DNA of 64,000 nt, from positions 62,001 through 126,000 of the forward strand of contig OZ025668.1 in NCBI GenBank assembly GCA_964019335.1, given 5' to 3'. This DNA is from Diplonema japonicum (lineage: Eukaryota > Protista > Euglenozoa: Diplonemea). The first letter of the stretch is position 1; each line of letters starts with the position of its first letter. Made by a program: the position numbers and the translations under genes. A model generated the notes under the pieces. The model was not told where the DNA came from. It did no database searches and worked only from the letters and a program-made list of their open reading frames with translations. Below are positions 2,681 through 62,457 of the stretch, piece after piece.

Positions 2681-5323
2681 TCACACAATCGGGTCGTCTG
2701 GGATCAAACGAAACTTCAGCAGACAGCTTTGCAGCGCCTCGCTGAAGTTTGGGTCATCGATCTGCAGATGTGGATGATGGTGGGTGCATACCTGGTTCGA
2801 GTACTCAATGAGGTGCTGCGTCACCTGTTTTGCCAGCTCCTCTTCCTCCAGCAGCGAAATGTCCTCAACAGCGTCGATGTCTGTCTTCGACACTTCTCTC
2901 TTGACCTTGAGCATCTGCGTCTCTATCCTAGCGGTGGCTTCCTTGAAGTCATCTGACTCTCTCTCCAGCTTCTCCTTCGTCTCCTTTATGAGATGTAACC
3001 TGGACGCCAGCTCTTCCCTGTTCCGTTGCTGGTCGGTCAACTCTTGCAGCTTCGACATCTCTGTCTTCAGGAAGTCTTTCATGTCGTTAGCCCGCCTGTT
3101 CACCAGCTGCTGGATCTCTCTGTTCTTCACCTCCAGCCCCTTCTTTGTTGCCACTTCAACATCGTTGTCGCCTGCTTTCTTAAATTGTGTTTTATACTGT
3201 ACGTTGCACCCCTTCAGAATGGCAAGCGTCTTGTCCATCTTTCTTGCCTCCTTCTCAACTCGCTTGATCTCTGCGTCCAAGTTGTCCCCTTGTACCTGCA
3301 GCATCTCCCTTTCTTTTGCTGTTTTTACGATGTACTGAGCATGTGTCATTTCACCGTCCGGGTTTTCATCTTCCTTACTGATTCTGCTGATTAGCACTTG
3401 GAATCTATTCTTCAGATGATTGACCTTGGACTCTCTCTCCCGCAGCTCCATAGCCAACTGGCGTCTCTCCTCTTCGCCTGTCTTCACTTCCATGTTCAGC
3501 ACCTCCTTGTGCACTTTGATCTCAGTCTCGCGCTCCTCGATTGTCACTGTCAGCTGTTCTTTCCTGTTCTCCAACCCCAGCAGCTCGTTCCCTCTCTGGT
3601 TCACCAGGCTCCGCAGCCTGTTTACCTGCAGTTGCAGAACATCGTTCTGTACCATGAGCCCCTCCTTCTTCTTCAGCAGGACGTTCAGCTCTGTTTGACA
3701 GCTTTCATTCTCAAGCGTTAGTTCCAAGATGACATCTGTGATCCCCTTCTGGTCCTTCTCCTTTCCTTCCAAGTCGATCTTAGCCTGCCTCACGTCATCT
3801 GTCACCCTTTTAACCTGCAAGTCCAGCACCTTGTGTTGCTTGAGAAGGTCGTCAAGCATAGTTTGCAGCATTGCGATCTTTTCCTTCAGCTCTTTCCTTT
3901 CTTCTTCCGTCCGCTCTCCTTTAGCTCTGTTCACTTTTCGCTCCATTTGCTGCACTTGGAACTCAACGTTATACAAAAGCTCCTGCTGTTTGAAGGACTC
4001 CTGGTCTAGCTGGTTTATCTTCGCCAACATGTTCTTATTCTGCGCTTGGGCGCCGCTGATCTCGGCTAAGTAGTTTGCCTGCCCTTTCCGAACGGTGTAC
4101 AGCTCTTGCGACTTGTTATACTGCTCGTCTTTCAGCTGCTGCATCTCCTGGTCGAGGGACTTTAGAGACTGCTCTGTCTGCGACAGCAAGTCATGCACGA
4201 GCTTGTTCTGCCCCTCCAAGTCTTTCGCCTGTTCGTTCTCGTTTTGCAGTCGGCTGATGGTCTTCTCATGAGACTTCATCATCAGCTCATAGCTTGTCTG
4301 CTTCGTGTCTAATTGCTTCGTCTGCTGCACCTTATCTTGGTTTCTCGCATTCAGGTCCGCCAGTGCCTTGTTTAGGGTGTTTTTCAACACCTCTAATTCA
4401 TCATCGAGCTCTGCAAGGTGTTGCGAGATCAGCAGATGGTCTGACCTGTACTTGCTGAGGACACGCTCCTCTTGTAGTATCTTGTTGTCCAGCTCCTTGT
4501 TGTTCTGCTGCTCGACATTCAAGAAGGCGCTCCTGTCTTGAAGTTGCTCGGTACGCCTTGCCAACCACTGCTTGCCTTCGGCAAATCTTTCCCTTGCAGC
4601 GTTGATGACCTGGTCTCTCTTGTGCATGGCGTGAACCGCGTCTTCCCACTGCTCCACAAGCTCTTGTCGCTCTTTGTGTAATCTTCTGAAGTCCTCTGCC
4701 GTCTTGTCCAACTCTATCTGCGCCGCTTGCGTTTCAGTAATCTCATCCTCGACGTGCTTCTTCTTCTCTTGCACGGCTCTTGAGAGCTTCTCAATCTGCA
4801 GGTTCAGCTCTTTCACTTTTGAAGAGTCTTCTTTGCAGTACCTTTCGAGAGCCTGGGTGTCGTCTTCCTTCTGCTTTCTAGCCAGGTCCCATTGCTCTAG
4901 CTCCTCCTGTTGGAAGCTCATTGAAGCTTTGAACTCGTCCATCTTCACGTTGCCATGGAAGATGCTGTTCTGGATGGAGTCGATCTTTTCTTGCAAGTCG
5001 TTCTGCTCGCGCACGAATCTTTCCATTTCCTGCGTCACGCGTCCCATCTCTCTGTCTGCTATCTGTGCCAGGTGGTCCTCCGTCTCGATCTCCCTCCGCT
5101 TCGCATCGTACAACAGCTGCGTGTTGGTGATCTCTTGCTTCACATTCTTCAAGTGATCCAACATAAAGCTCACTCGCGACGTGTTCTCGTCCACGTCTCT
5201 TCCCTTGTTCTCGATCTCCAGCTCATAGGCTTTCATCTGGTTTGTGAGCTCCTTGTTCACAGCGTTGAGCATCTGCGGCGGCAGCATGTCCGCGCCATCG
5301 TTCACATCCGGTATGTCGTCCAT
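2681..5323 (-). CDS. CCDC39: Coiled-coil domain-containing protein 39 (axonemal 96-nm ruler, FAP59 orthologue)
   Basis: 880-aa coiled coil with family motifs HLKNVKQE, ETEDHLAQIADRE, QIELDKTAEDFRRLHKERQELVEQWE, QQELLYNVEFQVQQMERKV and LQVQGDNLDAEI. Probable 30-nt in-frame intron at 2762-2791. Confidence 0.9.
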   Translation of the reverse strand: MDDIPDVNDGADMLPPQMLNAVNKELTNQMKAYELEIENKGRDVDENTSRVSFMLDHLKNVKQEITNTQLLYDAKRREIETEDHLAQIADREMGRVTQEMERFVREQNDLQEKIDSIQNSIFHGNVKMDEFKASMSFQQEELEQWDLARKQKEDDTQALERYCKEDSSKVKELNLQIEKLSRAVQEKKKHVEDEITETQAAQIELDKTAEDFRRLHKERQELVEQWEDAVHAMHKRDQVINAARERFAEGKQWLARRTEQLQDRSAFLNVEQQNNKELDNKILQEERVLSKYRSDHLLISQHLAELDDELEVLKNTLNKALADLNARNQDKVQQTKQLDTKQTSYELMMKSHEKTISRLQNENEQAKDLEGQNKLVHDLLSQTEQSLKSLDQEMQQLKDEQYNKSQELYTVRKGQANYLAEISGAQAQNKNMLAKINQLDQESFKQQELLYNVEFQVQQMERKVNRAKGERTEEERKELKEKIAMLQTMLDDLLKQHKVLDLQVKRVTDDVRQAKIDLEGKEKDQKGITDVILELTLENESCQTELNVLLKKKEGLMVQNDVLQLQVNRLRSLVNQRGNELLGLENRKEQLTVTIEERETEIKVHKEVLNMEVKTGEEERRQLAMELRERESKVNHLKNRFQVLISRISKEDENPDGEMTHAQYIVKTAKEREMLQVQGDNLDAEIKRVEKEARKMDKTLAILKGCNVQYKTQFKKAGDNDVEVATKKGLEVKNREIQQLVNRRANDMKDFLKTEMSKLQELTDQQRNREELASRLHLIKETKEKLERESDDFKEATARIETQMLKVKREVSKTDIDAVEDISLLEEEELAKQVTQHLIEYSNQVCTHHHPHLQIDDPNFSEALQSCLLKFRLIPDDPIV
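2762..2791 (-). other. Spliceosomal intron, 30 nt, phase 0, in frame
   Basis: CAG|GTATGCACCCACCATCATCCACATCTGCAG|ATC; removes the out-of-character peptide VCTHHHPHLQ. Confidence 0.7.
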
Positions 5324-5367
5324 GTCTCCTGTGTGTTATTAATGGTGAAACATAATGGTGCAACTAA

Positions 5368-6417
5368 TTATCCCAACTTAGGCTGGCCCTTACACTTATT
5401 GAAGCTGATACTACCATTCATTCTCCTTAGTACCTCTGCACCGTTCTTGCTGAAACTGTGTGATGTGATACACGTGCTGCCTGTGTGCGAGAGCTGCAGC
5501 CCTGCCCTGCGCAGCAGTGACAGTTCTTTCATGTTGAACCCTAGTGCGCCACGGACCGGCTTCACGCCTGTTACTTTCGCTTGTGACCACAAGGTTTTCG
5601 AGAGGAACTTGTGTGTGATATTTGAAACGGCTCGTAGCGCGACGAGGTCAGGGAAGGGGAGGAAGGAGGCAACGGCCGAGCACAACGAGGGTGAGGAAAA
5701 GGGGGACGTGGCCTCTTCTTCTTTTTGTTCGATGTGCTGGAAGGCACCCGCGAACTGGCAGGCGTAAGCAAAGCAGTCGAAAAGATCTGCTTCAGCTGAC
5801 TTGCTGACATGAAGAAGAACTGGGAGGTCGCAAGGGCCTATCCTGTCCATAACCATGACAACACCTGCTGTCGCTAGGATGTGCGGGGCAAAGCATCTCA
5901 TGAGAGGTGGAGTGCAGCAGATGGACACGATGCTATTATAGCACTCGCTTGGTGGCACAGAAATGTGATGCTCAGAGGCCTCAGTCAGCACAACCTCCAG
6001 CACCCTGAAGGGGCTGTGAACCATCAGGTCAAAGTCGATGCTGTTCATGATGTCCAGCTCGTACGATATGACCGTCTCCTCCTCTACACCTTGCATCACA
6101 CTCGACAGCCTGCTGACAAATTCCTGCCGACTGAGGTGCACATCATTGCACTTCACACCCAGGTAGAGGGCTGAAGTGAAAACATACATGTCCTCACCCA
6201 CCTCCCGCGTACCCACTTCTTTGTCTTCCCTGCAGTAGTAGCGCTCCAAAAACATTGCCGCCGAACAGAATACGTTCAAGTTCAACCTTACACGCCTACA
6301 CACATCGTAACACAGGCACAGCACACCCCACAACTTCTCGAGCCTTGCTTGTGACCTCTGCACTACAACCTGCAGTTTCTCCAAGCTCCTCCTGTGGCTT
6401 GATGACTCCCAGTCCAT
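5368..6417 (-). CDS. Transcriptional-type cyclin (cyclin C/H-like box) with C-terminal F-box-like motif
   Basis: Cyclin-box motifs SAAMFLERYY, ALYLGVKCND and YELDIMNSIDFDLMVHSPFR; then LCSAVASFLPFPDLVALRAVSNITH. Start at ATG 6417, after an AG. Confidence 0.75.
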   Translation of the reverse strand: MDWESSSHRRSLEKLQVVVQRSQARLEKLWGVLCLCYDVCRRVRLNLNVFCSAAMFLERYYCREDKEVGTREVGEDMYVFTSALYLGVKCNDVHLSRQEFVSRLSSVMQGVEEETVISYELDIMNSIDFDLMVHSPFRVLEVVLTEASEHHISVPPSECYNSIVSICCTPPLMRCFAPHILATAGVVMVMDRIGPCDLPVLLHVSKSAEADLFDCFAYACQFAGAFQHIEQKEEEATSPFSSPSLCSAVASFLPFPDLVALRAVSNITHKFLSKTLWSQAKVTGVKPVRGALGFNMKELSLLRRAGLQLSHTGSTCITSHSFSKNGAEVLRRMNGSISFNKCKGQPKLG

Positions 6418-6546
6418 CTTACATATTACCTGGGGTATGGCCGGCTTTAAGGAATTATGCGAAAACAAAATACAATACATCCAAAAACATACTCTGTTCT
6501 CTCTCCTTCTCATACACACAAGGAAAAAAAAGATACAATACAAAGC

Positions 6547-8235
6547 CTATTCTTCGGCAAAACTTACTACACTTTCGCCCCTATGCATGCTTTCCATACT
6601 TGGGTGCGGATGTACCTCTGAAGAGCTCGCAGGTGCGAAAGGTGCGCTTGCAGGCTGGCTAAGGTGCTGGCTTGCCGTACTGATTGGCTGGCTCAGTGGC
6701 TGACTCGCAGGGTCCACAACACTGGCAGCCACGGCACTGGTGGGCTGCGTGGTCTGACTCTGATAGTCTTGCAGATTATCTTGCGGTATACTCTGGTGAG
6801 AAGCGGGCGCAGGATGCTCGTCAGGATGAAATTCATCAGCACCACAAGGAGAAGTGGACTCGCCCCTCACTGGTTCGAAAGAAGGGGAAGCGGTCCCAGT
6901 CGCAGACTGATCCAGTACAGTAGATGGTGTGGGTGGCTGAACCACAAGACCAATCACTTGTGACGTAGGAGCAGACAGCATGGGCTCGCTCTGCACGGGC
7001 TCTGACACATGCATTTGCTCAGCTTCTGAAGCCGCAGCTGGCTCTGGTTGGAACTCAGGTTGATACTGCTCAGACTCTGGCGCTTCCATTTCCTCTTGTG
7101 GCTCTGGTTCCCACTGTGCTTCCTGCTGCTCAGCGACCTCGTCCTCTTCGTCATACTTCACAGAAACCACTCCGGCAGACTTCACGCCCTCCGACTGCGC
7201 GGCGGATACGTAGCTAACGGGCTCTTGGTGGTCCTCTGGCGCTTCTTTGTTCATCTTTGCTTCGCGTTTCAGCGCCTCAAGCAGCCCCTCACCTGCCCTG
7301 TAATCCTTCATGATTGCTTCCTCTGACCTGCGCTCTATCTGAGCAGATAACGGCCGCGAGAGTCTGGATGGGGACACTGGCACCCTGCTGCCCTCGCTGG
7401 GGGCTCCGATGGTGGAAGGGTTCATGTTCGTCACTAAGGATTTGTCCTGCAGCTCAATGCCGCACGAAAGCTTCAAGCGTGCCCGTGTCATCAGCTCCTG
7501 CACACGGTTGTTCACTGCATTCTCCATGTCCGAAGCCCCGAATCTCGCAGGTGGGGGAGGGGAATGGTAATGATGGGAATGAGATGGCGATGGAACATTG
7601 ATGATCTGCACTACTGGAGAGGGCGAAACTGGTGCTGCGTAAGGAACCTGTGCGTGGTACAGCTGCGTAGGAAAAACGTGAAGAGGTGAAGCAATAGGAA
7701 TAGCGGGCGCCACCGGGACCGGGATGGCATGAGGACTTGCCGGGAGGCATGGTGAGGGCTGGTACACGACTCGTGGAGATGTATCATTCAGCAAATGGAC
7801 ACAAGTACGCAATGCTTCCTCTTCGGCATACTTGTCTTGAAGGTTTTGCAAGAGGGCCGCCTCCTTTCTGCTATTAGTAATATCGCGCTCCGCATCACGG
7901 ATCTCCTGCTCGGCCTTTTTTATACGAGCTTCAGACTCAGCACGCAGGCTTGCGAGTCTCCTTTGCTCTTCGACCTCGTGCTGAGGGACAAGTCGCGGGG
8001 GCACATAAAGAGGATCCCTGTTGGGGCTGAGTATGGGCGGTGGGCTATAAGCTGGGCTCGTTCTAACCACACCCTCGGGGGGTGGAGACATGGTGACGCC
8101 TGCCTCGAGGCTCTGCATCTTCTGCTCCACCCGGTCCAGGGAATTGACGGCGCTGTTATGAATCCCAATCCCGAAGTTCGACATCTCGGCCCTGATCGAA
8201 GCAAGCCGTGCGTCGAGTGCTACTTGGTCCGTCAT
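6547..8235 (-). CDS. Hypothetical Pro/Ser/Glu-rich protein with a short coiled coil
   Basis: Long ORF with coding-like composition; ATG 8235 preceded by CAG and a U-rich tract. Confidence 0.7.
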   Translation of the reverse strand: MTDQVALDARLASIRAEMSNFGIGIHNSAVNSLDRVEQKMQSLEAGVTMSPPPEGVVRTSPAYSPPPILSPNRDPLYVPPRLVPQHEVEEQRRLASLRAESEARIKKAEQEIRDAERDITNSRKEAALLQNLQDKYAEEEALRTCVHLLNDTSPRVVYQPSPCLPASPHAIPVPVAPAIPIASPLHVFPTQLYHAQVPYAAPVSPSPVVQIINVPSPSHSHHYHSPPPPARFGASDMENAVNNRVQELMTRARLKLSCGIELQDKSLVTNMNPSTIGAPSEGSRVPVSPSRLSRPLSAQIERRSEEAIMKDYRAGEGLLEALKREAKMNKEAPEDHQEPVSYVSAAQSEGVKSAGVVSVKYDEEDEVAEQQEAQWEPEPQEEMEAPESEQYQPEFQPEPAAASEAEQMHVSEPVQSEPMLSAPTSQVIGLVVQPPTPSTVLDQSATGTASPSFEPVRGESTSPCGADEFHPDEHPAPASHQSIPQDNLQDYQSQTTQPTSAVAASVVDPASQPLSQPISTASQHLSQPASAPFAPASSSEVHPHPSMESMHRGESVVSFAEE

Positions 8236-8525
8236 TGTATACCTGCTTGGATCAATAGAAATGGGCGACAGGAAAACAAATAAATCGAAGAGAATAACGC
8301 ACAAGCCAATCGCTTGATGTGCGTCCTGTTTTCTTTTTCTTTCAGTAGTTATTTTCTACTATTCACTTTTGTCCGTTTTTTTTTTTTTTTTTGTTGTTGC
8401 AGAGAAATGGTATACAAGAGGGGGGGAAAAAATAATAGTTTCTTGTTTCACATTTTATTTTAATATTTCAACAGTTCGGAAGCGCATTATGTAGGTGCTA
8501 TACACAAATCAAGGTAGGAGATGGC

Positions 8526-11500
8526 TCAGGACTTCTTAACAAGGTGAGCAGGAGGGACACCTTTCTTTGTCTCTCCATACTCTATACCGACACGTCCTCT
8601 GCTGATGCCAGTGACCTGAAATTGGTGTGTGGACGTGTTGTTGATGTCATACCTTTGCGTCGATGGGTTTCTGCCCTTCAGGGGTGTACTGTGCCGCGTC
8701 ACCTGCTGTCCATGCTGTAGTGTCGCACTGCCTCAAACAAGAGGCAGGCATCCCTACCTTTGTCTCATCTTCAAGTTCAACAGCAATTCTATTTCTAGAA
8801 TGACCTGTAACTTTGCCACTCTTGCCATCGTGTTCGCTGCCTGGCGCAACGACATGTACGTGGCTGCCTTCAGGAAGGCAGTCCTTCTCCTTCTTCACCG
8901 CACGAAGGGTGCTGTAAGGCAAACCCTTGGTCTCATCGCCCATCTGAACAGCCACTCTCCCCCTCCCGTGTCCCTTCACCGTCCCTACTTCACCGGTTGT
9001 CACAACCTCCACATTTGTCTCTACGGGGAAGGTCTCGTCCTGCACGGTGCGCAAGACGTCAGCTGGAACACCCACGACACCGTTCTCGGTCTCTACGCTC
9101 ACCCTACCCCTGAAATGCTTCTGCACCCAACCTGTCAAGCCATCAAGGTCAGCGCTATGTCCCTTAAATTGTACCTTTGAACCAATTGGGAATCTGTGGG
9201 TGGGTAGCGTCACTGCACGCAACATCCCTGCGGGCACACCCACAGTGGTGCCGTCCAACAAGCTCACGCCAACCCTTCCTCGAGTCACTGCACACACCCT
9301 GCCTGTCAAGCCTGCTGACTTCCCAGCCAGCACCTCCACTTCGCACCCAACATTGAAGCCCTGAGCAGCAGACTTCCCGCATGGGCGCAACTGTTCCGCC
9401 GGCACGCCCACCAACTCATCGTTCAACAGGCGTACACCGACCCTTCCTCTATGTGTGCCTTCCACTGTGCCTTCCAGACCGTTGTGCTCATCTTCTGTTG
9501 CAAGCACCACAAAGTCGCCCTTCTTGACCTTCTGCTCTGCCATCTTTCCAATAAGTCGCAGTCCATTAGCAGGCACACTGATGTTCGACCCATTGCGAAG
9601 CAACACGCCTACTCTGCCACGTGCAACGCCTGTTACTGTGCCTAGTAACCCAAAGTGATCGCTTTCGCTGACAACGACTTCTACTTCTGCTCCAAGGGCG
9701 AAGCCCTGATCGGCACCCAGCCCTTCCTTCCTCAGCAATGGTGCAGGAACACCAATTTTAGTACTGCATGAGAGCTCCACGCCTATCCGTCCACGTGTTA
9801 CGCCCGTCACGTTGCCGCATGTGCCGTTGTGCTCACCTCCAATCACGTGCACTCGCTCACCCTTCTTGAAGTGCAGGTCAGTGACTGTTGATTCCGATCG
9901 TAGTTGCTCTGGTGGAACACCAATGACAGTGCCGTTACGTAGTTCTACACCTATCCTCCCTCTGTTCTTTCCACAGACTTTTCCGACAAGGCCATTGATC
10001 TTGTCATCTTCGCAGACCACAACAACCTCTGTATCTTTTCTGAACTTCTGGCTTCCAGACATGCCACTGTCTTTGAGCTGACCGGCAGGCACACCTACCA
10101 CCTGTCCATTCCTCAATTCGACACCAACACGGCCCCTTACAACGCCCACCACACGGCCCTGCATGCCATTCGTCTGCTCGTTCTCGTTGACAACGTCCAC
10201 TTCCCTCCCAATAGGGAAGGCTTGCCGTGCTGTCTTTCCGCAGCTACGCAGCTGTTGAGGAGGTAGCCCTACCTTGTCACCGTTCTCAAGTTCAACACCA
10301 ACACGACCCCTGAAGTTCCCAGTGACCTTGCCGTGGCGTCCGTTCAGATCTTGGTTCTCGCAGGTGATATCAACAGCAGTCCCAACAGGGAAGGCTTGTG
10401 ATGCAGACTTGCCCGCAGCACGAAGCTGTTGTGGTGGGAGACCTACAACATCACCGTTCTCAAGTTCAACACCAACACGACCCCTGAAGTTCCCCGTTAC
10501 CTTGCCGTGACGGCCATTCAGATCTTGATTCTCGCAGACGATGTCAACAGCAGTCCCAACAGGGAAGGCCTGGGAAGCATTCTTCCCAGTAGAACGAAGC
10601 TGCTGAGGAGGGAGACCAACCTTGTCACCATTCTCAAGCTCGACACCAACACGGCCCCTGCAGTTCCCAGTGACCTTGCCGTGACGCCCGTTGAGGTCTT
10701 GATTCTCACAAACAATGTCAACAGCAGTCCCAACAGGGAAGGCCTGTGATGCAGACTTGCCCGCAGCACGAAGCTGCTGAGGAGGGAGACCAACCTTGTC
10801 ACCATTCTCAAGTTCAACACCAACACGGCCCCTGAAGTTCCCAGTGACCTTGCCGTGGCGACCGTTCAGGTCTTGATTCTCACAGACTATGTCAACAGCA
10901 GTCCCAATGGGGAAGGCCTGAGAAGCGTTCTTCCCGACAGAACGAAGCTGCTGAGGAGGTAGACCAACCTTGTCACCATTCTCAAGTTCAACACCAACAC
11001 GGCCCCTGAAGTTCCCAGTGACCTTGCCGTGGCGCCCGTTCAGGTCTTGATTCTCGCAGACGATGTCAACAGCAGTCCCAACAGGGAAGGCCTGTGATGC
11101 AGATTTGCCCGTAGCACGAAGCTGTTGAGGAGGTAGACCAACCTTGTCACCATTCTCAAGTTCAACACCAACACGACCCCTGCAGTTCCCCGTTACTTTG
11201 CCGTGGCGACCGTTGAGGTCTTGGTTCTCGCAGACGATGTCAACAGCAGTCCCAACTGGGCAGGCCTGAGAAGCGTTCTTTCCGACAGAACGAAGCTGCT
11301 GAGGAGGTAGACCTACCTTGTCGCCGTTCTCAAGTTCAACACCAACACGACCCCTGCAGTTCCCAGTGACCTTGCCGTGGCGACCATTCAAGTCTTGGTT
11401 TTCACAAACAATGTCAACAGCAGTCCCAACAGGGAAAGCTTGTGATGCAGACTTGCCCGCAGCACGAAGCTGCTGAGGAGGTAGACCTACCTTATCGCCG

Positions 11501-14472: not shown

Positions 14473-14661
14473 GTGCTCTGTCCCTATATGGTGCTGTGAG
14501 ATGAGTTGCACCCTCCGAGGGGAATACACAACAAATAGAAACACTTGAAAGCGGGAAAAAAAAAAAAAAAAAGAGGACATTGCAAAAAAGAAAGGCAGCC
14601 TTGTGGTGCGAGTTTCGTTTAGTTAGGAGTGACCCCATTTGTACAAAGTGACCTGCCTTCA

Positions 14662-14692
<31 letters not shown>

Positions 14693-14899
14693 CACACTAC
14701 AAAAGAAAAAAGAATCATTATGACAGGGAGAAGCACTAGCAACACCCCTAAAGGGGACAAAATCATAAATCAGTATCGAAGTGATTTCTTCTAATAACAA
14801 TGCCGAAAAGAAAGGGAAGAAGGGGATGGGCAACGGAAAAAAAAACACTGTCCGACGTGGTAGTTAAGTAGGGGGGAGGGATATAAAGAAAAAAAAGGG

Positions 14900-15598: not shown

Positions 15599-15692
15599 TT
15601 TGGCAGCTCTTCTTCCTGGGAAAAAAGGAAAAAAATGGTTAAAAAGAGAAATTACAGCAAAATGCGAGGTGGGGAAGAAGAAGACTACACCC

Positions 15693-50284: not shown

Positions 50285-50324
50285 AGTAGAACAACAACAA
50301 AAGAACAATAAAACTTACTTCTTT

Positions 50325-53300
50325 TTAGAGAAGGACACCGGAGTCGGGGCTGGGCTTCTGTGTTTTTTTTTTTCTTCTTTCTCTAGTTCTTCTTCATGCC
50401 ATACCGATGGAGGTTTACCCCCGAGGAGGTCGTCAGTAGGAGGAGGGGCTGCAAGGTTGCTTGGCTTAATAGTGGGGAGCATGCTCTCCATGGTGGCGTT
50501 GCCAAGCCCTGCAGGGCGCAGGGCTTTAGCAGGAGGCTTCCCACCGAGAAGGTCGTTCTTCATGAAGTCAGGACCCAGCCCGGGGAGGCCGCCTGCTACA
50601 GCGTGGCCAAGGGGTGCAAAATCGTCAGAGTTGAGATCGAGGTCGGCGGCAGTGAAGTTGTAGTCATTAAGCCTCGCCTTCCCATACAGGGCGTCTTGTA
50701 GCTCTTCCTTTGCAGACTGATTCAGCTGTGTCCCTTTAATCGCCTGCCGCACTGTTGTCTCTAAGTACTCACTACTCTTCGCCATTTCTGTCACTGCAGC
50801 GTCCAGTGTCACTGTCGCTGCTGTGCCCAGCCCACCCTTCTTGAGCACGCCCCTCACCGATTGTTCTAGCGCCCCTTTCATGGGGTTCATCCCGCTCATG
50901 TCCGCCGCCCCGTACACGAACGACAATTTCCCGTCCAGTCCATCCTCAAGCTGCTTCTTTGCGTCAGCCGGGAGGTCCATCTTGCTAATGACGTCGCGCA
51001 CGGTGCCCGAGAACTTCGTCTCCTGCGTCTCGAAAGCCTTCATCGTTTCCTGTAGCTCGCCATGCTGGTTGCCCTTCAGGATGTTCCTCACGGCAACAGG
51101 CACCATCCCGCTCTGCGCCGCTTTCTGTAATGGTGCCATCCCATCCAGGGACACATTGCCGTCGAAGTTCAAGTCCAATGCGCTCTTCAGCTTCTTTTGA
51201 GCATCAGGTTGAGCCACAGCACCGTTCTTGAGGGCCTGCTGTGCTGCCTCACGCAGGCTTTCGTGCTTCGAGTTTGCTTCATCATACGCCGCCTGCAACT
51301 TCTTGCGCATGTTGACCGGGACGTCAGGTTGGCTCAGCACAGCTCCGACGGCGGCAGCGACCTGCCCCTTGGACATGGCATTGCGCGAGACAGGGTCCAT
51401 GCCAGATAAATCAGTTGCAGGTCCCCACGTGTCGTTCACGGCATCCTCCAGAAGCTTCTTCGCGTGCTGCGGCATTGATGGGTCTTCGCAGTTCGCTCTG
51501 ACCTGCTTCAAGAGTGCCTCCTCCGCCATCGCAGCCTCACGTAGCTTATCTTGCAGGTTGGGTCCTGCAGAGGGCTCCTCCGACAGGATAGCATTGACGG
51601 CAACAGGCAGCTGCCCCCTCGCCATACCTGCCCTCTGCAGCGGGTCCATCTGCGACATAGCGTCAGCGTCAGGAGCACCGAAATCACAGTCCGCAGTTTT
51701 CATCGCGTTGTTCAACCCAACCGCTGCTGTGTCTGACGCGGAGAGGGCGTTCTCCAGCTGCTGCTTGTCGGCGGCGTTCATGTCCATCTGCTTCAGTGCG
51801 TTGCGCACTGCGATAGGTGCTTTCCCGTGCTTGATGGCATTGGCGTCCATGTCGCTCAAGCTGTCGGGCGGACCCCACACGTTCCCATCGTTGAGCATGG
51901 TGTCCAGATACCCCTTAGCCTCGCCCGGTTGCATATTAGCAACAGCTTGCCTCAGCGCCTCGTCTGTGGACTTCACCTTCTGCAAAGCTTCTTTTGTAGA
52001 CTGCTTCATCGCGGGATCTGTCTTCGCCATCTGCTCCGCCGCTGCAACGGGCTTGCCTCTACCGAGCGCTTCCTTAACCATTGCGTGGTCGCCCATAGAC
52101 CTGATGCTGTTCTGGTCGCTCAGGGCGTTCTTCAGCTGCATCTGTGCGGGTGCCGGCACAGCGCTGTTTGTTGATGCTGCTGCAGCGGCTTTTACGACGT
52201 TGCTTCTCGCCTTGTCATTGTTACGCAGTGCTTCCTCCATCTTCTTACGCAGATTTGCCGGCACTCCTGGTTGTCGCAAGGCCTCCCTGCTCACAGCAGC
52301 GAGTGCCCCTGCCTTGACTGCGTTGCTTAGAGGATCCATGTCATTGAGGTCTGCAGGTCCCCAGTTCCCGATCAAGGCACTGCCGATCTCATCCTTGATG
52401 TGCTGCGGAGTAGCTTCGTTGCTGGCGACATCCCTCATGGCCTTCTCGAGTGCTGCGTCCTTTTTCTTGAGGGCATCCGAGCTTGCCAACATGTCTTTTG
52501 CAGCTGCTGCAGGCACTGAGCCACCTTTCAGTACATCCTCCACCGCAGCAGGCACCTTGCCTATCGCAGCGGCAGATACATGTGAGGGCTCTACTAGCTT
52601 CGAGAAGCTTGTTTTATCAGGGCTGCCATCATCAACGGACTTCAGTAGATCTTTGTTATTCTTATTAATGTTCCCTGACCCAGCAGCTGCGCCTGCAGCA
52701 CCCGCAAGGGCCGCTGCCGCGACTTCCCAGTTCTTCAGTGGGCCCTCCAGCTGCCCGGCAACTGGAGCTAAGGCTCCTGACTTCATGGCATCAGCTAAGA
52801 TAGCTCCCGTTTTGCCGTCCGCTATGGCCTGCTTCGCTAGTGGGTCCATCAAGCTCTGTGTGCAATGTGATGTTCTAAGTTATAAGCATACCATGTCCGC
52901 AGGGCCCCAGTCATTGTTCAGCATGTTCTCCAACGCCTTCTTCCCATCGGCTGACAGGCCTGGTGAAGCAAGCGCGCTCTTCGCTGCTGCACGACAGTCA
53001 TCCGTAGCCTGTATTGTGTTTTTTTGAGTTTCCATGTCTACCTGGTCAAAGTCCTTTAGCTTGTTGTCAAGGTTTTTCTTCCAAGGAGGGGTAACGCGGT
53101 TCCCGTTGTTGTCGATTGGCGGCTGCAGCTCACGTGCTGCTGCGGCAACCTTGCCCTTTTCCATAGCTTCGCGGTGCAGGGGTTCCATCCCGTCCTGTTG
53201 TAAGGTGAGTGTCGCCTTGCTACATACCGTGTTGCCAGCATTCCACATCATTCCTCCCACAGCCAGGGGTGCAAGGCCAGCCAGGTCAGCAGGACCGAAA

Positions 53301-56300
53301 TCGTTACCTGGTGCGCCCCTCACAGGATCCATCCCGCCAAGGTCAGCGGGACCAAAGTCAGGGCCAGAAGCAGTACCCGGTGAGGGTGCGGCCTTAACAG
53401 GGTCCATGCCTCCAAGGTCGGCAGGCCCGAAACCGAGACTGTCGTCAGCAGTAGGATCACCTTTTTTGTTAGGGTCCATCCCATCCAAGTCAGCAGGCCC
53501 GAAGTCCATAACACCATTTCTCTTGTTGTTGGGATCCATCCCATCCAAGCCAGCAGGCCCGAAGTCCATTCCGTCATCCTTAGGCGAAGGGGGCAAGTCC
53601 TGTCGCGGGTATAACGATAATTTGCAGCATACCATATTGAAGTTCACCCCAGGTTCGGGTTCTGCAGGTACTGTTTCCGGCTCCGGTTCTGGCTCAGGTG
53701 CCTTCTTCTCGTTGGGATCCATCCCATTGATGTCCCCAGCACCCCACTCTCCGAGAAGTGCTTGGTCTGCTTGCGCTTGAGGTGGCTTCTGCTGCTTCTT
53801 CTTTTTGCGCAAGAAGTAGTATAGTGCCAGCATCAGCAAACAACAAAAGAGCACTGACAAAAGAATTATCAGCCACAAGAGACACGTGCCACCAATTTCA
53901 ATGGGGCAAGAACTGTCGTCTGATGCAGCCCCGTTACCTTCTGTTGGTGGGTTGGTCGTGTTGTCGACAGGAACGGGACCCTGCACCGGGGGCTCGACTG
54001 GGATCGAACAGTTGTCACCATCCCACCCTTGGGAGCAAACACAGGAGCCGTCGATCCACGAGCACTGGCCGTTGCTAGAGCAGTTCAGGGCAGGCTCGCA
54101 AAAAACATTGCACACACGAGGGGGGAAGTAGTTGGGAATACACTTCTCACACGATCCGTCAGTTTCTGTCACGAACGTCGGATCGCACTCGCACTGCAGT
54201 GTGTCGGTGTTGCACTCGCCGTTGTAAGTGCAGTTCAGCCCCCGCGAGCATGGTATGCTGCAGTTTGTGCCACCCCAGTCTGGGTCACACATACACGTTG
54301 CATTGTTATTGCAGTCCCCGTGCATCGAGCACGTTTTCTCCCTGCTGCAGTAGACGCATACGCTATTCACCATGTAGTTGTCTAACTTGCACACAGAGCA
54401 GTCCAGCCCTTGATACCCTTCATCACAGTCACAGCCACCGTACTGGTTGCAGGTGCCACGCCCGGAGCAGTTCGCATCCTTTTCGCAGTACACGTCACAC
54501 CTGTTTTCAGGGTACCAGTTGGTTACGCAGATGCTGCAGTTGGCACCTGTCCAGTGAACGGGGTCGTCGCACACGCACAACCCGTTGCTGTCGCAGGTAC
54601 CTCTGTCCTTGCATGTGAACGGTTTCGTGCAGAACGTGTCACAGACGGTGGAAGGGTACCAGTCCGTCTCGCACACGTCGCAGATATCTCCTTCCCAGTT
54701 CCCAGACCCGGCGACACCCGAAACCCTCTTGTCGCACAGACACACACCCAAGGCCCCTCCTGCATCGTTCTTGTTGCATTCACCGTGCCCACTGCAAGCA
54801 GCGCGTGTACAAGAAATATTGCAACCATCAACAGTCTGTAAGTGTCGTGTGTGGTGCGATCACTGCATACCCAAGGCCCTATCCAATCAGCATCACAGTT
54901 GCATGTGTTTGGGTACCCGTTTACATCGAACCCACACTCGCCGTTTCCAGAACAGTTCTGAGCCCTATCGCACACCTGATCAGTTGTTCAGATTCAAAAC
55001 TTATGCATACCTCGTCACATGAGCCTGGTGGGTAGTACGGCGGAGAGCAGTCGGTGCAGTCGGCACCCCCAAGAGGCGGAGTGCAGTCACACAAACCCGA
55101 AACAGGATTGCACGACCCGTGCCCGTTGCAACTGCTTTTGTCGCAGTAAATACTGCAGTTTGCAGTCAGATTGTAATAGTTTGTATTGCACACATCACAA
55201 GTAGCGCCTGCCCATTGCGGATCGCAGATGCACTCACCAGCATTTGCAGGGTCTTCATTGCAATCACCGTGTGCGTTGCACGTTATATTCCTTGTGCAGA
55301 AAACATCGCACTGACCTTCGGGGTAGAGGCATGGGCCGGTCACAGTTGCCGCAGCAGGGGGGTTCGAGAGAGGGCAATCAGCACACAATGTGCAGTTGGG
55401 GTTGATACTAACGTTCTTTCTCGAAGAGTCACACACCTCGCATTTTTCACCAGCAAACCCAAAGTTGCATTCACATGAAAAGCCATTGGGGCAGATGCAC
55501 TTGTGCTGCTCTTCGCACTGTGCAGGGATCGTGATGCTGATGGTGGTCTCGGCGGTTAAACCAAAAATGTCAACAGCAACCACCTTCATTTTGTAGATTG
55601 TTCTAACCAAGAACTCCGAGGTGATGCTCTCGGGCCTCTTGGCTACAATTTTGTTTCCACTGAATGTAAACCTGCCCCCAGCACCGCCATCGGGAAGCAG
55701 CCAGTCGACGATGCGCACACATGTGCCGTTGGCGACCACCTGCCCGAATTCGTCGTTTTTGTCGATGACGCTGTACCACGACTTGTCGTACTGATATTCC
55801 TCCCAGTTGATTGTGAAGCACCCTTCAGGCGGACAGACAAGCGACTCAGGTTCCAGTGCAAAGGTGATGTTCGCCATCTCGGACCAATCGCCCGATGAAT
55901 CCTTCACCCTGTACAGACAGGTCTCGGATGATACCTTGTCCACGTTAGCCTTCCTCGTAAGGTCGGCATCGGGTGTGTAGGTGAAAGCACCGTTGGCTTG
56001 TACAGCGATAGTGCTTCCATGTTCGCATGTGCCGACCCCACCAGCCGCGGGGGTCACCTTTGGGTCGTCTGTGAAGGTGGGTGCAATAACTGCTTCTAAA
56101 CTGAGCAGTTTTGGCGACCAGTCGTTTGCAAGCAGCCCCACATAGAAGTCAACAGTGAGCGGGGTAGTAAACTTCCCGGCAGTACGGGAGACACCAAACA
56201 AGTCATGCCCCGCCAAAGGGTTCGATGGCTGACCGGGCACAATGCGAAACCTTCTGATGTTCCCGTAGATCACACCGTGCTGGCTGAGGTTGTACCAGGC

Positions 56301-57140: not shown

Positions 57141-57222
57141 GGGATCGTTATTCCTGTGTGTGCTGAATACAATGACGCAGGGGGTGGGGGCACTGTTGAT
57201 AATAATCTAATAATATATATGT

Positions 57223-59925
57223 CTATGGTTCTAATTCATCAAAAGGCTGCTCGTGAGACCATGTGGTTGGGAGCCGGCCAAGGCGGATCGAGTCAGCAAT
57301 GCGCATCTGACTGTTGAGGAAGCTGCACCAGCTTCTGCGGGAACCCAGCGAAGAGGTACACAATGTGAAGATGCTCACCTTCGCATCGGTGTGTCTCTCA
57401 AGCCCGAAATAGAAGTAAACGCCGTCGTTACCAAGATCTTCCGCAAGGCGTGCAGTCTCTGAGTACCTCACCCTCCCCAGAGGCTTCTCGCGTCCCCTAC
57501 CGTGCTTCGACTCGTGTACTGGGTAGAACCTGAGCTCTCTATTGTCTGCTTCTACCCACACGTCCTTCCATGTGAGCTCTTTCTCCCCATCCTTGCCTCT
57601 CCGTAATGTCCTCAAACATCCCTCTTTTGAGTTCTCTTCACGAGTTTCAGGCTTTGTCCTCTCCTCCAGCTCCTTCTGTTCCACCAACGCATCGATGTTC
57701 TTCACATTAGTCAACAACGCTTCGCCCGTCTCGCGATGCCTGGTGAACTGCTTGTTGATATCTTCTAAAATCCCAAGTGCACCAGAAGAGTCCTGCACCT
57801 CGGTCCTGTCCACATTGTGATAATGCTGCGGTGGTGGGGGGTACTCCGCAGCATCCTCTGTTTTGTCCATCTGTGCCGGCACTGTCTCTGTGACCTGCTT
57901 AGCGAGGCTTGTTGTGTAATCTTCCAACTTGTGCTGTGTCTCGTCAGCATACTCCTTTGCCTCGTCTTTCAGAGCCATCAGTCGTCGTGTAGCGTCGTCA
58001 GAGTACGTTACGTGTTCCCATTTCCTGCGTGCATTGTATGATGACTTCGGCAGGGCCAGCGGGCGGACAGTCGGGTTGTGTGAAGGCATAGCGGCATCCA
58101 CCACCCCTACTGGCGACCTTGTCGGGCTACAGCTTATGCCCTCTCTGCTCACTACAGGCAGTGACGGAACAGGGGGCGGGGTGTCTTGCACGAAGTTGGC
58201 GATGGGCCCCTGCACAGACGAATCGGACGTGGCCGCGGACATGACTGATGCTTCTGGGTGGGGAACAGGTGTTCCCTGCAGCCTGGCTATGACTTCCTCC
58301 ATTTTTAGCTGCGGAGGGCTCGACTTCTTCGGCTCCTGCAAAACGACAGACTTTCCCGCCGGGGTCTTCTTCGGGCTCCGAGCGCGCCTCATCGGAGATG
58401 GCGACTGCGAGGGCCGCGGTGGCAACGGCATCGCAGGCGGCTGGTGGTGAGGGTCGTAGTGAATTGGCTCCTTGCGGGCTGCCTTAGACCTCTGCAGCAT
58501 ATCAAGGACATTGTCCACATAAGGACCTTCAATAGTCGGTGACTCGGGGCGGGGCTGGGACTGGGGCTGTTGAGCTTGTCGTAGTTGCGGCTGGGGCTGA
58601 GGAGTCGCAGGCTGCGAGGGAACACGAACCTTGCGTGCTTGCGGAGTTGTTTGCAGCCTTACAACAGGTGGTGCAGAGGTTGAAAAGGCAGGCACAGACT
58701 GCGCACGAGGATATTCCACACCTCCCGGGCTGTTGCCCAGTTGCTCTCTTATGTGCCTCAGCTTTTCCTCAATATCTGTGCTCGCATTGAATTGCGACTT
58801 CGGAATTTGTGGGCTGTGGTCAAGCTGCGGGATTACTGGTGGGGCGTGAAGCGAAGTGGAAATCTGTTTCTGGATATCCTTCCGCGTAACCTGTGTGTCG
58901 TATGGGGAGGCCTGGTACGAGGGCTGCTGGGGGGACCGCTGTGGAGTATTCTGCACCTGTGGAGACTGCTGAAACTGTTGCTGAAGTTGGACTGACTGCA
59001 ATGGATGCAATTGTTGAAGTGACGGTGATGGCTGAACATTCTGCACCATGACGGGCTGCTGTTCAGGCTGCTGCGCTACTGCTGACTGATGCTGCTGACT
59101 ATGTTGCTGCACTTGCTGATTCGGTGCCTGAGGATTTTGATGTTGCGGTTGTACAGACTGTTGTTGAGAAACATGCTGTTGTGGTGGTGTAGAAGGGATG
59201 GAAGGGATGGAAGGGGGCGGAAGGCTATCGCTGGCTCGCCTAGCGGGCGACACAGCGTAACCAGGAGATGCGACAATCCGAGGCCTCTCAGATCTCGGGG
59301 ACAACGATCTATAGTTCGGAGACTTTGGGCGCTGCTCTTGCTGCCTGTGATATGTCCGCTGAGGGGATGGAGACATGGGCTTATTCTTCCTTCTCTTCAG
59401 CTGCCCGTCTATTCCTCGCAGCTCGGCTTCTAGGCGGCGTTCTGCCCGCTCGATCTCTTGATTGTGCTTGTCATAGTAGTCGATGACCTTGTTCTGCAGG
59501 TCTTGCTGAGGTGTTCGGGGCTCAGACTGACGTGCGAAGTAGGGGTCCCATCCCTTTTCTCGGGATTGCTGTGGAGAGCCACCGGGCGACTTACCTGACC
59601 GAGATCTAGGGATCGAGCTGCGGTGGGATGCGGTGGGGGACCTCGGCACCGACACAGGTGCCCATGAGGGTGACGAAGGTGAGGGAGGTACTCGATCCCT
59701 CGCGGGTGACACTGGCCGCTTCTCGCCTGTTTGGCCACTGGTGGCTACAAACGACGTCTGCTGCTCCTCGTCTTTCTTTTTCAGTAGGCGGTGGTACATC
59801 ACCTCCATCACAGCCTCGACTTCGGGGGCAAACAACGGCGTGTCAGCCATCTGCTGCTGCACCTGCTCCAGTTCGCTGTGCACCTTCCCTGCACTGCCCG
59901 CCAACGCTAACACTTCATTTTCCAT
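57223..59925 (-). CDS. Pro/Gln/Ser-rich protein with C-terminal PH domain
   Basis: 900-aa ORF; KEGCLRTL...WKDVWV...LRFY...FTLCTSSLGSRRSWCSFL fits a PH fold. Confidence 0.8.
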   Translation of the reverse strand: MENEVLALAGSAGKVHSELEQVQQQMADTPLFAPEVEAVMEVMYHRLLKKKDEEQQTSFVATSGQTGEKRPVSPARDRVPPSPSSPSWAPVSVPRSPTASHRSSIPRSRSGKSPGGSPQQSREKGWDPYFARQSEPRTPQQDLQNKVIDYYDKHNQEIERAERRLEAELRGIDGQLKRRKNKPMSPSPQRTYHRQQEQRPKSPNYRSLSPRSERPRIVASPGYAVSPARRASDSLPPPSIPSIPSTPPQQHVSQQQSVQPQHQNPQAPNQQVQQHSQQHQSAVAQQPEQQPVMVQNVQPSPSLQQLHPLQSVQLQQQFQQSPQVQNTPQRSPQQPSYQASPYDTQVTRKDIQKQISTSLHAPPVIPQLDHSPQIPKSQFNASTDIEEKLRHIREQLGNSPGGVEYPRAQSVPAFSTSAPPVVRLQTTPQARKVRVPSQPATPQPQPQLRQAQQPQSQPRPESPTIEGPYVDNVLDMLQRSKAARKEPIHYDPHHQPPAMPLPPRPSQSPSPMRRARSPKKTPAGKSVVLQEPKKSSPPQLKMEEVIARLQGTPVPHPEASVMSAATSDSSVQGPIANFVQDTPPPVPSLPVVSREGISCSPTRSPVGVVDAAMPSHNPTVRPLALPKSSYNARRKWEHVTYSDDATRRLMALKDEAKEYADETQHKLEDYTTSLAKQVTETVPAQMDKTEDAAEYPPPPQHYHNVDRTEVQDSSGALGILEDINKQFTRHRETGEALLTNVKNIDALVEQKELEERTKPETREENSKEGCLRTLRRGKDGEKELTWKDVWVEADNRELRFYPVHESKHGRGREKPLGRVRYSETARLAEDLGNDGVYFYFGLERHTDAKVSIFTLCTSSLGSRRSWCSFLNSQMRIADSIRLGRLPTTWSHEQPFDELEP

Positions 59926-60025
59926 TTGTATCTACAGATACTGCGGTGAGTGCTTCGCCTTGTGAACCATGCAACAATTAAATAATAAATACTACAAAAG
60001 CAGATATCTACAAAATCTATCCACT

Positions 60026-61186
60026 CTAAGTGGCTTCTAACACCTGGTTGTATACAATAGCCTTTTCTCGCTGGTACGTAAGCTCTCGATATACCTGTGT
60101 GGGATAAACTAAAGGAGCTCCTTTCCATACCTGTTCGGAAGCGTGTTCGAGCACAGCACGTTTGGCAGCAAGCTCGGATTCGGCTTTCTGCAGCGCGAGG
60201 TGGTGGAGGGCGCGTTGGGAGTTGAATTTTATGCTCTCGGCGTGCCAGTTGAGGTCGACGGTGTCCTTCCGGACCTGCAGCTCGTGATGAGAACGAACGG
60301 AACGTGCTTCCGAACGGGGCGGTGTGTAGGCGGCTATGGGGTGGTCGTAAAGGCGACGCTGTGTCATGAAGCTATCATGTGGGGGGCGCTGCGTCATGGG
60401 GGTATCACTAAGTGGGCGCGTCATGGGGGTGTCGTAAAGCGGACGCTGCGTCATGGGAGTTTGAGAAGCAAAAGGCGGGATGAGATGCACATCCCTTGGG
60501 AAGGTCTCAATGCCCATCATAGGCGCAATGGGTGCCACAGTAGTGATCTCGGGTTCATCATCCAAAACAGTGATGGCTTGTATCTCGGGCTCGTCGTTGG
60601 GAGGCATCGTCTCCGTCTCGATGCCATCTGACACATTGAGGCGGCGGTTGTAGTTGAGACCCGGCGGCACACCACCTGATGACATCACTGACTCATAAAC
60701 AGAAGGCGTGAATTCTGCGTACCCATCCTCGTCGTAGATGCTCCCCCCTGCAGTGCCCCCCCTTATGGGCATTGTACCAGGTAGTGCTGGCAGAGGAGCG
60801 GGTGTTGGTGCATTCACATTTACCGGTGCACTTATATGCGTCATCTCTTTCTCTTTCTCCACCTGCCGCTGAACCTCTAAAGCTATCTCCCTGTCTTTGT
60901 CTATCTTGTTGATGTCCACGTCGTAGTACGCCTGCGGCGGGGGGGCTAGTACCTTCGCCTTCAACACCAACATGACACCGTCTGTGATCCCTACCTCCCT
61001 GCAGTTCTGATACCCCATTAGCTCCTTCCCATCGAATACCAACCTCTGTTTCTCGACCTCTATCCGTGTGAGGTCGGACAGGTGCTCTTTTAGTTGTGCT
61101 ATCGACAGCTTCCGCAGGCTTCCCTCAAACACCAAGCTGTACACCATGTCGTCCTCCTCGCATCGTGTCTTGATGGTGTTTGGCAT
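60026..61186 (-). CDS. Protein with N-terminal ubiquitin-like domain and C-terminal coiled coil
   Basis: SIAQLKEHLSDLTRIEVEKQRLVFDGKEL...VGITDGVMLVL; about four DTPMTQRP-like repeats; probable 36-nt intron. Confidence 0.8.
   Translation of the reverse strand: MPNTIKTRCEEDDMVYSLVFEGSLRKLSIAQLKEHLSDLTRIEVEKQRLVFDGKELMGYQNCREVGITDGVMLVLKAKVLAPPPQAYYDVDINKIDKDREIALEVQRQVEKEKEMTHISAPVNVNAPTPAPLPALPGTMPIRGGTAGGSIYDEDGYAEFTPSVYESVMSSGGVPPGLNYNRRLNVSDGIETETMPPNDEPEIQAITVLDDEPEITTVAPIAPMMGIETFPRDVHLIPPFASQTPMTQRPLYDTPMTRPLSDTPMTQRPPHDSFMTQRRLYDHPIAAYTPPRSEARSVRSHHELQVRKDTVDLNWHAESIKFNSQRALHHLALQKAESELAAKRAVLEHASEQVWKGAPLVYPTQVYRELTYQREKAIVYNQVLEAT
60095..60130 (-). other. Intron, 36 nt, phase 0, in frame
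   Basis: ACAG|GTATGG...ACACAG|GTAT; removes a helix-breaking segment from the coiled coil. Confidence 0.7.
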
Positions 61187-61256
61187 GGTGCCCTGTAGGG
61201 ATTGTTGATGAAACGTCATATCTCTAATAATAAATCAAATCAATACAGGATACAAT

Positions 61257-62457
61257 CTAACCTTCGGGGCTTTGGATAACAGGTTTGCGTTTCGGGGTGC
61301 ATAATTTGTCAGGCCTGTCAGTAGCAGGCCTGTCGGAAGGGACGGGTGTCAGGCGGGGTTCGCGCTGACATGTACGAGCATCTGGGACTGAATCAGAAAA
61401 CAATTCACGGTACCGAGGCGGGAGGGTTTTGATGATGGAGGTCACCTTGTGGAAGTCCGTTTCTACGGTCTCAAGGTCGGCAACAGTGCGGTGGGCCTCC
61501 GCTAGCTGCACGCTCTTGTGTTCCACCGCATCACGCAGCACGTTGACCTCCACATCCTTCATCCTCGCAGGGATCCCTGCTTTGATGTCGTGGTCGATGG
61601 CAGCCCGCACACGTGCCCGCTCCACACTGGCGAGCTCCTTCCCTGCCTGTGCATCGTTGTCGTCGCCACCCTAGTGATGATAGGCCAATGGATAACATTG
61701 CATACCCTGTGTGCTCTGAGCTGGCCCTTCGCAACGTGCAGCTGCCTAGCAAGGTCCATGCACCGCTCAGTTTGTTGCTTCAGGCGCACCTCCATGTCTT
61801 CGTTCTGAGAAAGGGAAAAGAAATTCGTTACCACAAACTCACGGTAGGTAGGTATACCTGTGCCTCAAGCTGTGTGAGCTTGATTTCAGCGTTCTCCGCA
61901 CGGGCGGCGAACACGGGGATGTCTCTTTCGTATTTAACAACTTTCATGCGGAGGCTGTCGAGCTGGTCGGTAGTGCCGTGCAGCTGGGTGGCGTAGGCTA
62001 CTTTAGCTTCCTTGTTGGTGAGCTTCTCGATGTCGAGGGCTTTGATGGTCTTGCGCACGGAACGGGATTCCGCTTTGAAGTGGTCGATGAGCTTCGCGAG
62101 TTCGTCTTCACGCTTGTGAAGCTCCTGTGCCAGCTTGGCCTTCTCGGACTCTAGACGTGTTGAAGTGTTTCGTGAAACGGCCAGCTGAGCAGCATGATCT
62201 TGTTGCTTGCTGATAGCTTCTCGCAACGCGGTGTCTCGTTCGTCCAGCCGAACTTGCATCCTAACGACCTCATCACGAAGGTCTAGTACTTCTCTGTCCT
62301 TGCCTTGGATCTCGCCAGCGTAGCGATCTACCTCCCCCTCCAACCATTCTGTCTCCTCGATCTCTCTTTTCAGGTAGCTCTTCAGCACTGTATTATCCCT
62401 CACAGTAACATTGAGCTCACCTTTCAGGGAGTCAATAGCATCCCGCCGACGGATCAT
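61257..62457 (-). CDS. Coiled-coil protein; exons 62457-61858, 61804-61706, 61670-61257
   Basis: Three ORF fragments join in frame through two GT-AG introns with continuous heptad character. Confidence 0.8.
61671..61705 (-). other. Intron, 35 nt, phase 0
   Basis: AGG|GTATGC...TCACTAG|GGT. Confidence 0.85.
61805..61857 (-). other. Intron, 53 nt, phase 0
   Basis: CAG|GTATAC...TTTCTCAG|AAC. Confidence 0.85.

Follow-up and report, generated by a model that had tools for sequence, protein, structure and literature searches.

A moderate excess of phase 0 among the short introns of Diplonema japonicum and its correlation with the last exonic base

Introduction

The introns of Diplonema japonicum have been described as U2-type, with a (G)/GTATG donor, a CAG acceptor, an A-rich tract replacing the polypyrimidine tract and a median length of 41 nucleotides (nt) (Thakur et al., RNA 2025, PMC12621601). 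The introns considered here, from a 64-kilobase (kb) stretch of D. japonicum DNA (the window, whose coordinates are used unless another region is named) and from two further regions of the same genome, have the same termini, donor, acceptor, A-rich tract and length. Intron phase was analysed neither in that paper nor in the P. papillatum genome paper. The published assembly of D. japonicum YPF1604 comprises 62.30 megabases with a longest scaffold of 1.19 megabases and is unannotated so far (PMC13598402). We found the phase distribution unreported for diplonemids, and the tally of phases given below, together with its link to G at the last exonic position (−1), is new descriptive data.

Few quantitative signals bear on intron gain and retention, and intron phase bias is among them. 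In ten model eukaryotes the phase-0 fraction ranges from 38.2% to 57.6% (PMC1574350). The proto-splice-site model, in which introns occupy MAG|R sites (Nguyen et al. 2006, PMC1574350), describes features that recur in D. japonicum: phase 0 is the commonest, the flanks are enriched in AG|G, and the excess is partly predicted by the placement of such sites relative to codons. In contrast to the range of that study, the phase-0 fraction of D. japonicum, 60-68%, lies at or above the top, and no more than 44% is predicted from context. Phase 1 is no commoner than phase 2, a feature found in Arabidopsis too.

Another described system is that of introners, introns derived from mobile elements and known from Micromonas and Aureococcus. 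The introns of D. japonicum resemble them in a short motif that some of them share and that is followed by poly(A), in a poly(A) run before the acceptor in about 40% of introns, and in AG|GTA repeats at some junctions. They differ in that the shared elements are short 8-mers found in few introns, while most sequences are unique; no multi-copy full-length family or target-site duplication was demonstrated, and no parent element was sought.

A preliminary description of the window had reported 17 of 18 introns in phase 0, the sole exception being 14989-15039, and had proposed a link between the reading frame and the way in which introns are gained, retained or recognised. A eukaryote with near-exclusive phase 0 would be remarkable, and D. 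japonicum is not one. What remains is about 60-68% phase 0, which places this genome, whose introns are very short and 3'-biased, at the upper end of the known range.

Phase Distribution beyond the Window

Because GTN and NAG codons are common, phase 0 is strongly over-represented among the raw GT...AG pairs of coding sequence, and a phase-neutral method was therefore required. Introns were called by a Viterbi gene-structure parser with a 3-periodic order-3 Markov coding model. This model chose the true frame in 97% of 30-codon windows and replaced plain codon log-odds frame calling, which was too weak at 0.2 bit per codon. Intron scores were computed from intronic positions only (donor +1 to +9, acceptor −12 to −1) and from length, and known introns and the non-coding strand served to calibrate the parser penalties; settings with low penalties over-predicted, giving 88-243 "introns" per strand, and were rejected. 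A short intron was considered high-confidence if it had a motif score of at least 18 bits, a length of at most 100 nt and an upstream frame margin of at least 10 bits. Detection by the parser is phase-neutral. When real introns were planted randomly in long open reading frames (ORFs), 93%, 88% and 87% were recovered in phases 0, 1 and 2, respectively, and 3 of 287 planted non-phase-0 introns were moved to phase 0. With the retrained matrix, no high-confidence calls were made on the largely non-coding plus strand.

As an unselected sample, two arbitrarily chosen regions of 100 kb each were used, C1:300-400 kb and C6:400-500 kb. The high-confidence introns were distributed among the phases as follows (CI, confidence interval).

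C1 and C6 (unselected): phases 0/1/2, 32/8/13; 60% phase 0 (CI 46-74%)
Window alone: phases 0/1/2, 13/0/0; 100% phase 0
All three regions: phases 0/1/2, 45/8/13; 68% phase 0 (CI 56-79%)

Thus 21 of the 53 high-confidence introns in the unselected regions are in phase 1 or 2, and many phase-1 and phase-2 introns have strong signals, with motif scores reaching 27.6 bits and, on either side, frame margins of more than 100 bits. The phase-0 fraction stayed at 59-69% across thresholds and after retraining of the matrix. Outside the window, introns of phases 1 and 2 whose splice signals are just as good are common. Of the 66 high-confidence introns, 47 start with GTATG, CAG dominates the acceptor position-weight matrix, lengths in the sample range from 29 to 95 nt with a median of about 40, and the A fraction is 0.37-0.52. 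No clear relation was observed between phase and poly(A) content, the choice between GTATG and another donor, length modulo 3, or the presence of in-frame stops upon retention. Near-exclusive phase 0 does not generalise to the genome, in which phase 0 is a bias and not a rule. The preliminary description had itself named a genome-wide phase-0 fraction near 50-60% as refuting its proposal, and the unselected regions gave such a value, 32 of 53.

RNA Junctions in the C6 Region

The existence of introns in other phases is verified by RNA contigs examined over C6 94.1-100 kb, where four introns of non-zero phase had been predicted beforehand. Runs X7 and X8 represent the same organism, X1 a relative with about 97% identity, and X4 unspliced DNA. 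In contigs of X7, X8 and X1, CT..AC joints coincide exactly with the predicted C6 introns 94362-94408, 94632-94679, 95030-95080, 95365-95402, 99182-99233 and 99846-99883. Overall, eight RNA joints match the position of an intron exactly, seven of which had been predicted, and three of the introns confirmed in this way, 94362-94408, 95030-95080 and 99182-99233, are in phase 1. One intron merged by the parser was resolved by RNA into two, 95780-95853 and 95661-95707. The latter, a 47-nt intron with the non-consensus donor GTTCCC (GTTCCCCACC), had been missed by the parser together with the adjoining 72-nt exon, and therefore motif-based intron lists of this genome are incomplete.

One gene of this region contains eight introns with phases 0, 0, 0, 0, 1, 0, 1 and 2; every exon is open in the implied frame, as checked arithmetically in a script one exon at a time, and seven of the eight introns are supported by RNA. 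The last one, 94261-94297, in phase 2, lies inside a masked poly(A) repeat and is predicted only. Since exons of 145, 350 and 223 nt separate RNA-confirmed junctions, the phases in this gene must differ whatever the frame. With these exons and a further RNA-delimited one of 64 nt in a single gene, internal exons are not all symmetric, and the earlier suggestion that nearly all of them would be symmetric, skippable modules does not hold.

The spliced X1 contigs differ from the reference mainly by transitions and have the same introns removed, and the source of X1 is a close relative or strain sharing these intron positions. In the same region, L025:6700-8700 (L025 4100-10000 corresponds to C6 94.1-100 kb) is intergenic, with many conflicting DNA and RNA joints and loose ends at about 7485-7613 and 9180-9200, and probably represents either a low-complexity element or a repeat of the dispersed type.

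Exonic Base at −1 and Junction Sequence

The clearest correlate of phase is the exonic base at position −1, as seen from its distribution over the 66 high-confidence introns.

Base at −1 is G: phases 0/1/2, 37/5/3
Base at −1 is not G: phases 0/1/2, 8/3/10

Phase 0 accounts for 82% of the G|GT introns, compared with an availability in coding sequence of 37-43%; G at −1 itself is available at 37%, 41% and 22% for phases 0, 1 and 2. Taken by phase, G at −1 is found in 82% of phase-0 introns versus a codon-position-3 baseline of 31%, in 62% of phase-1 introns versus 36%, and in 23% of phase-2 introns versus 19%. Enrichment of G at −1 is highest where the position is synonymous. A phase-0 intron follows a CAG, GAG or AAG codon in 19 of 45 cases; the shares of Gln, Glu and Lys add up to about 15% of codons. 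Later synonymous tuning is not the only factor, since a change to A at −2 is non-synonymous; the choice of site or fixation by selection is involved as well.

These are canonical GT-AG micro-introns of the form (G)|GTATG...CAG with an A- or A/C-rich interior, most of them in phase 0. The moderate excess of phase 0 is limited to the G|GT introns and is tied to the exonic half of the 5' splice site, which has G at −1 and often A at −2. In CAG, GAG and AAG codons −1 is the synonymous third position, and G there would cost nothing. With intronic signals as minimal as these, the exonic NAG|G context may matter for the strength of the 5' splice site, and new introns might be fixed or kept preferentially where the flanking codons provide, or cheaply acquire, NAG|G. 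Of the frame-related mechanisms suggested previously, the idea of NNG|GT insertion sites is retained in this form, as a bias, while a rule tying introns to the frame is contradicted by the RNA-confirmed phase-1 introns and by the 60% phase 0 of the unselected regions.

On the other side of the intron, GT opens 9 of the 45 exons that follow a phase-0 intron (P = 0.009), and GTA opens 4 of the 45 (P = 0.0015). Together with an 8-nt repeat, ACAGGTAT, present at both junctions of the window candidate 60095-60130, these GT starts suggest that a subset of introns may have arisen from duplication-type events at AG|GT(A) sites. Downstream exons starting with GT(A) were also observed at C6 sample positions 48124-48163, 48389-48428 and 387-430.

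Size of the Excess and Competing Explanations

The expectation from context was obtained by matching the −3 to +3 exon flank of each intron to its placement in the long ORFs of the genome. This flank predicts 35-44% phase 0, so the proto-splice-site comparison proposed in the preliminary description accounts for part of the observed 60-68% and leaves the rest. Compared with the 44% expectation, both the 60% of the unselected regions (P = 0.012) and the 68% obtained with the window included (P = 6e-5) are higher. On the other hand, 60% is not distinguishable from 0.5 (P = 0.08) or from the 57.6% of Arabidopsis (P = 0.40). The phase-0 excess is real but moderate, at or just above the normal range of eukaryotes.

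The window is one of about 1,071 windows scanned in this genome. With 0.60-0.68 as the base rate, 11 out of 11 phase-0 introns have a probability of 0.004-0.015, at least 17 out of 18 one of 0.0015-0.0095 and at least 15 out of 17 one of 0.013-0.057; with the first of these values and about 1,071 windows, a few such all-phase-0 windows are expected by chance. The significance originally assigned to the window, 0.5^11 = 0.0005, ignored both the base rate and the number of windows. We consider it rather probable that the window represents the upper tail of a genome-wide distribution with about 60-70% phase 0 and that its introns are ordinary U2-type micro-introns.

Several points weigh against this conclusion. 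The sample is small, 264 kb in total with 66 high-confidence introns, and the introns of the window were read from sequence alone, the RNA junctions covering the C6 region only. Of the increase from 33% to 60-68%, only about one third is accounted for by the context of three nucleotides on either side. There is also a difference between the window and the other two regions (Fisher P = 0.006 for algorithmic calls, 0.04 for the curated list), which would mean heterogeneity had the window not been picked for its extremeness.

Heterogeneity is the core of an alternative that we regard as unlikely, although less so than the remaining ones. It assumes two intron classes, one C-rich, of the form G|GTATGC...ACAG without poly(A), older or distinct, placed after NAG codons, clustered near gene 3' ends, dominant in GC-richer regions such as the window and near-exclusively in phase 0, and the other A-rich and poly(A)-bearing, younger, possibly derived from retroelement tails, and in any phase, nearly at random. 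Composition points in this direction: the introns of the window contain more C (0.26 versus 0.14-0.16) and less A (0.37 versus 0.49-0.52) than the C1 and C6 introns, phase 0 makes up 82% of the introns with 20% C or more versus 58% of the others (Fisher P = 0.06, a trend), and the mean A content is 52-60% in introns of non-zero phase versus 44% in phase 0. The effect of composition is not significant once the selected window is left out (72% versus 54%, P = 0.25; Mann-Whitney P = 0.25-0.35), a split by poly(A) runs of at least 7 gives 71% versus 64% phase 0, and C-rich introns of the GTATGC type occur in phase 2 as well (C6 72497-72537, 206-240 and 45369-45412). If there were indeed two classes, about 70% phase 0 would be expected genome-wide, and the genome could serve as a natural system in which insertion bias and selective retention are told apart. 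To our knowledge, about 70% phase 0 would be the highest value in any eukaryote.

The putative second class may be related to a motif, ACGGGAATTTAAAG or GGGAATTT, that precedes poly(A) and the CAG acceptor in several introns.

C6 sample 86841-86883 and 49741-49788: shared-motif introns
C1 sample 23717-23753: shared-motif intron
C6 sample 52046-52094 and 99846-99883: shared-motif introns
Window 15318-15412: shared-motif intron

Three of the closest matches are in phase 2, and the introns in which ACGGGAATTTAAAG is followed by poly(A) are mostly so, which speaks for the two-class explanation; the motif introns overall are of mixed phase. They may represent a retroelement-tail type of intron.

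At the opposite end, the surplus of phase 0 might be nothing but noise and non-independent introns, such as those between tandem symmetric exons, with proto-splice-site availability and codon usage sufficing for the rest. We find this quite improbable. In its favour, the 60% of the unselected regions is compatible with one half, AAG|G and GAG|G sites are 63-65% phase 0 in the coding sequence of this genome, and some introns do lie in repeated exons (e.g., C6 48124 and 48389, both followed by gtaccc). However, the expectation from the introns' own context falls short of the observed fractions, as given above, and so does the availability of G|GT sites. As for near-exclusive phase 0 throughout the genome, with gain, retention or recognition of introns tied to the reading frame, its main argument is the set of 11 frame-restoring introns of the window, all in phase 0. 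Given the RNA-confirmed phase-1 introns within one gene and the high-scoring phase-1 and phase-2 introns found by a phase-neutral detector in the unselected regions, we hold it to be extremely improbable. The upper tail of a moderately biased distribution is the explanation of the window that we prefer.

Introns of the Window

The introns of the window were read on the minus strand; most have the form G|GTATG...CAG and a length of 33-55 nt. The curated list of 17 comprises 15 phase-0 introns, one phase-1 candidate and one phase-2 candidate.

61805-61857, minus strand: frame-restoring intron of 53 nt in phase 0, with GTATAC as donor and CTCAG as acceptor; links frame f1 (..LEAQ) with the 99-nt exon 61706-61804, with a stop if unspliced
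61671-61705, minus strand: intron, 35 nt, phase 0, frame-restoring; GTATGC..CACTAG; 20.6 bits; downstream exon open for 137 codons
60095-60130, minus strand: intron candidate, 36 nt, phase 0, in frame, stop-free, not obligatory; 24.9 bits
54976-55010, minus strand: intron, 35 nt, phase 0, frame-restoring; EGF-repeat gene; upstream frame margin 373 bits
54836-54870, minus strand: intron, 35 nt, phase 0, frame-restoring; separated from 54976-55010 by the 105-nt exon 54871-54975
53600-53632, minus strand: intron candidate, 33 nt, phase 0, in frame, stop-free; 20.3 bits
52856-52891, minus strand: intron, 36 nt, phase 0; flanked by open exons 1,944 nt and 2,451 nt long, which it joins; removal obligatory because of an in-frame TAA inside
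50358-50404, minus strand: terminal intron, 47 nt, phase 0, 10 codons before the stop; 25-27 bits
42947-42983, minus strand: intron, 37 nt, phase 0, frame-restoring; calpain-type gene, DUF1935 exon to Peptidase_C2 exon; 25.6 bits
32205-32239, minus strand: intron, 35 nt, phase 0, frame-restoring; near the 3' end of a 3,046-codon gene
32044-32076, minus strand: phase-2 intron candidate, 33 nt; GTATGC..CTGCAG; in frame, stop-free
16032-16069, minus strand: intron, 38 nt, phase 0, frame-restoring; DEAH-box helicase gene; donor GTACAT
15318-15412, minus strand: intron, 95 nt with a poly(A) tract, phase 0, frame-restoring; small Cys-motif gene
15149-15203, minus strand: intron, 55 nt, phase 0, frame-restoring; boundaries from hand reading, in agreement with the preliminary description
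14989-15039, minus strand: phase-1 intron candidate, 51 nt, in frame, stop-free, not obligatory; donor GTGTGT, acceptor TTTAG
8616-8652, minus strand: intron, 37 nt, phase 0, frame-restoring; 34 codons before the stop of a 1,991-codon gene
2742-2791, minus strand: intron at the end of the CCDC39 gene; donor 2791, acceptor 2762 (30 nt, in frame) or 2742 (50 nt)

The 11 frame-restoring introns, first noticed in the preliminary description as being all in phase 0, are fully confirmed by a frame-aware search and translation by hand. All 11 are GT-AG introns of 35-95 nt in phase 0, each of them joins two open, coding-like frames, and their donors are GTATG in nine cases and GTACAT and GTATAC in one case each. 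The broader count of 17 out of 18 stands in so far as nearly all introns of the window are in phase 0; in the curated list it becomes 15 out of 17, and a second exception is added to 14989-15039. This is the phase-2 candidate 32044-32076, absent from the preliminary description, whose splice signals are good. Its phase follows from the 128-nt exon that comes after a phase-0 intron, and since it is in frame and without a stop, it is invisible to detection by frame repair. The Pfam Agenet match nearby is weak and covers only the part before the candidate intron. A homology check of this gene in a large protein database yielded no D. japonicum product and only a 39% relative without the terminal domain, and a PDB search gave no matches.

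In the helicase gene the intron 16032-16069 splits the OB_NTP_bind domain: the upstream exon matches profile positions 1-61, and the first 23 residues of the downstream exon match positions 58-80. As judged from these profile matches, the split of the domain across exons is independent support for this intron. The exon downstream of the terminal intron 50358-50404 is too short for the coding-score test. The CCDC39 intron is in phase 0 with either acceptor, because both versions share donor 2791.

The stretch 14900-15600 on the minus strand holds a small gene, some 165 codons long, that has Cys motifs in pairs (FRCAL..., CVDEREDHLNC) and three introns in 0.7 kb, by far the densest intron cluster of the window. 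Excision of 14989-15039 from this gene would take out a Lys-rich insert. A Pfam search of its exons, one by one, gave no match.

Some calls of the parser were rejected by hand. Joins at 5329-5411, 57193-57259, 8243-8580 or 8326-8652, 14494-15203 and 31177-32076 are fusions of neighbouring genes, and the extension of the intron 15149-15203 to 710 nt is wrong by hand reading. A GTATG...CAG match at 54258-54294 is coding sequence of an EGF repeat (CDPDWGGTNC) and no intron.

Gene Content of the Window

All substantial, convincing genes of the window are on the minus strand. The spacers between them are short and rich in poly(T) and poly(A) runs, and the whole of 1-64000 is a unidirectional gene cluster of the kinetoplastid style. 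Pfam matches, obtained by submitting exons singly with no spliced protein or mRNA models, include CCDC39, a DEAH helicase, a calpain and EGF-repeat proteins; the match of the calpain gene to DUF1935, a kinetoplastid-type domain, is weak. An Rfam search of the window returned zero matches. Genome-wide, 131 matches to the protein-kinase domain were scored, and in 127 of them the domain is free of stops, which indicates that gene bodies are largely intron-free.

One further intron-like motif, GTAGGAAAG...AAAAAACAG, 36 nt long and scoring 23.9 bits, was observed between two predicted genes at 62704-62739 on the minus strand. A confident coding frame is absent upstream, and this element may be an intron of an untranslated region or a piece of an unrecognised gene with small exons.

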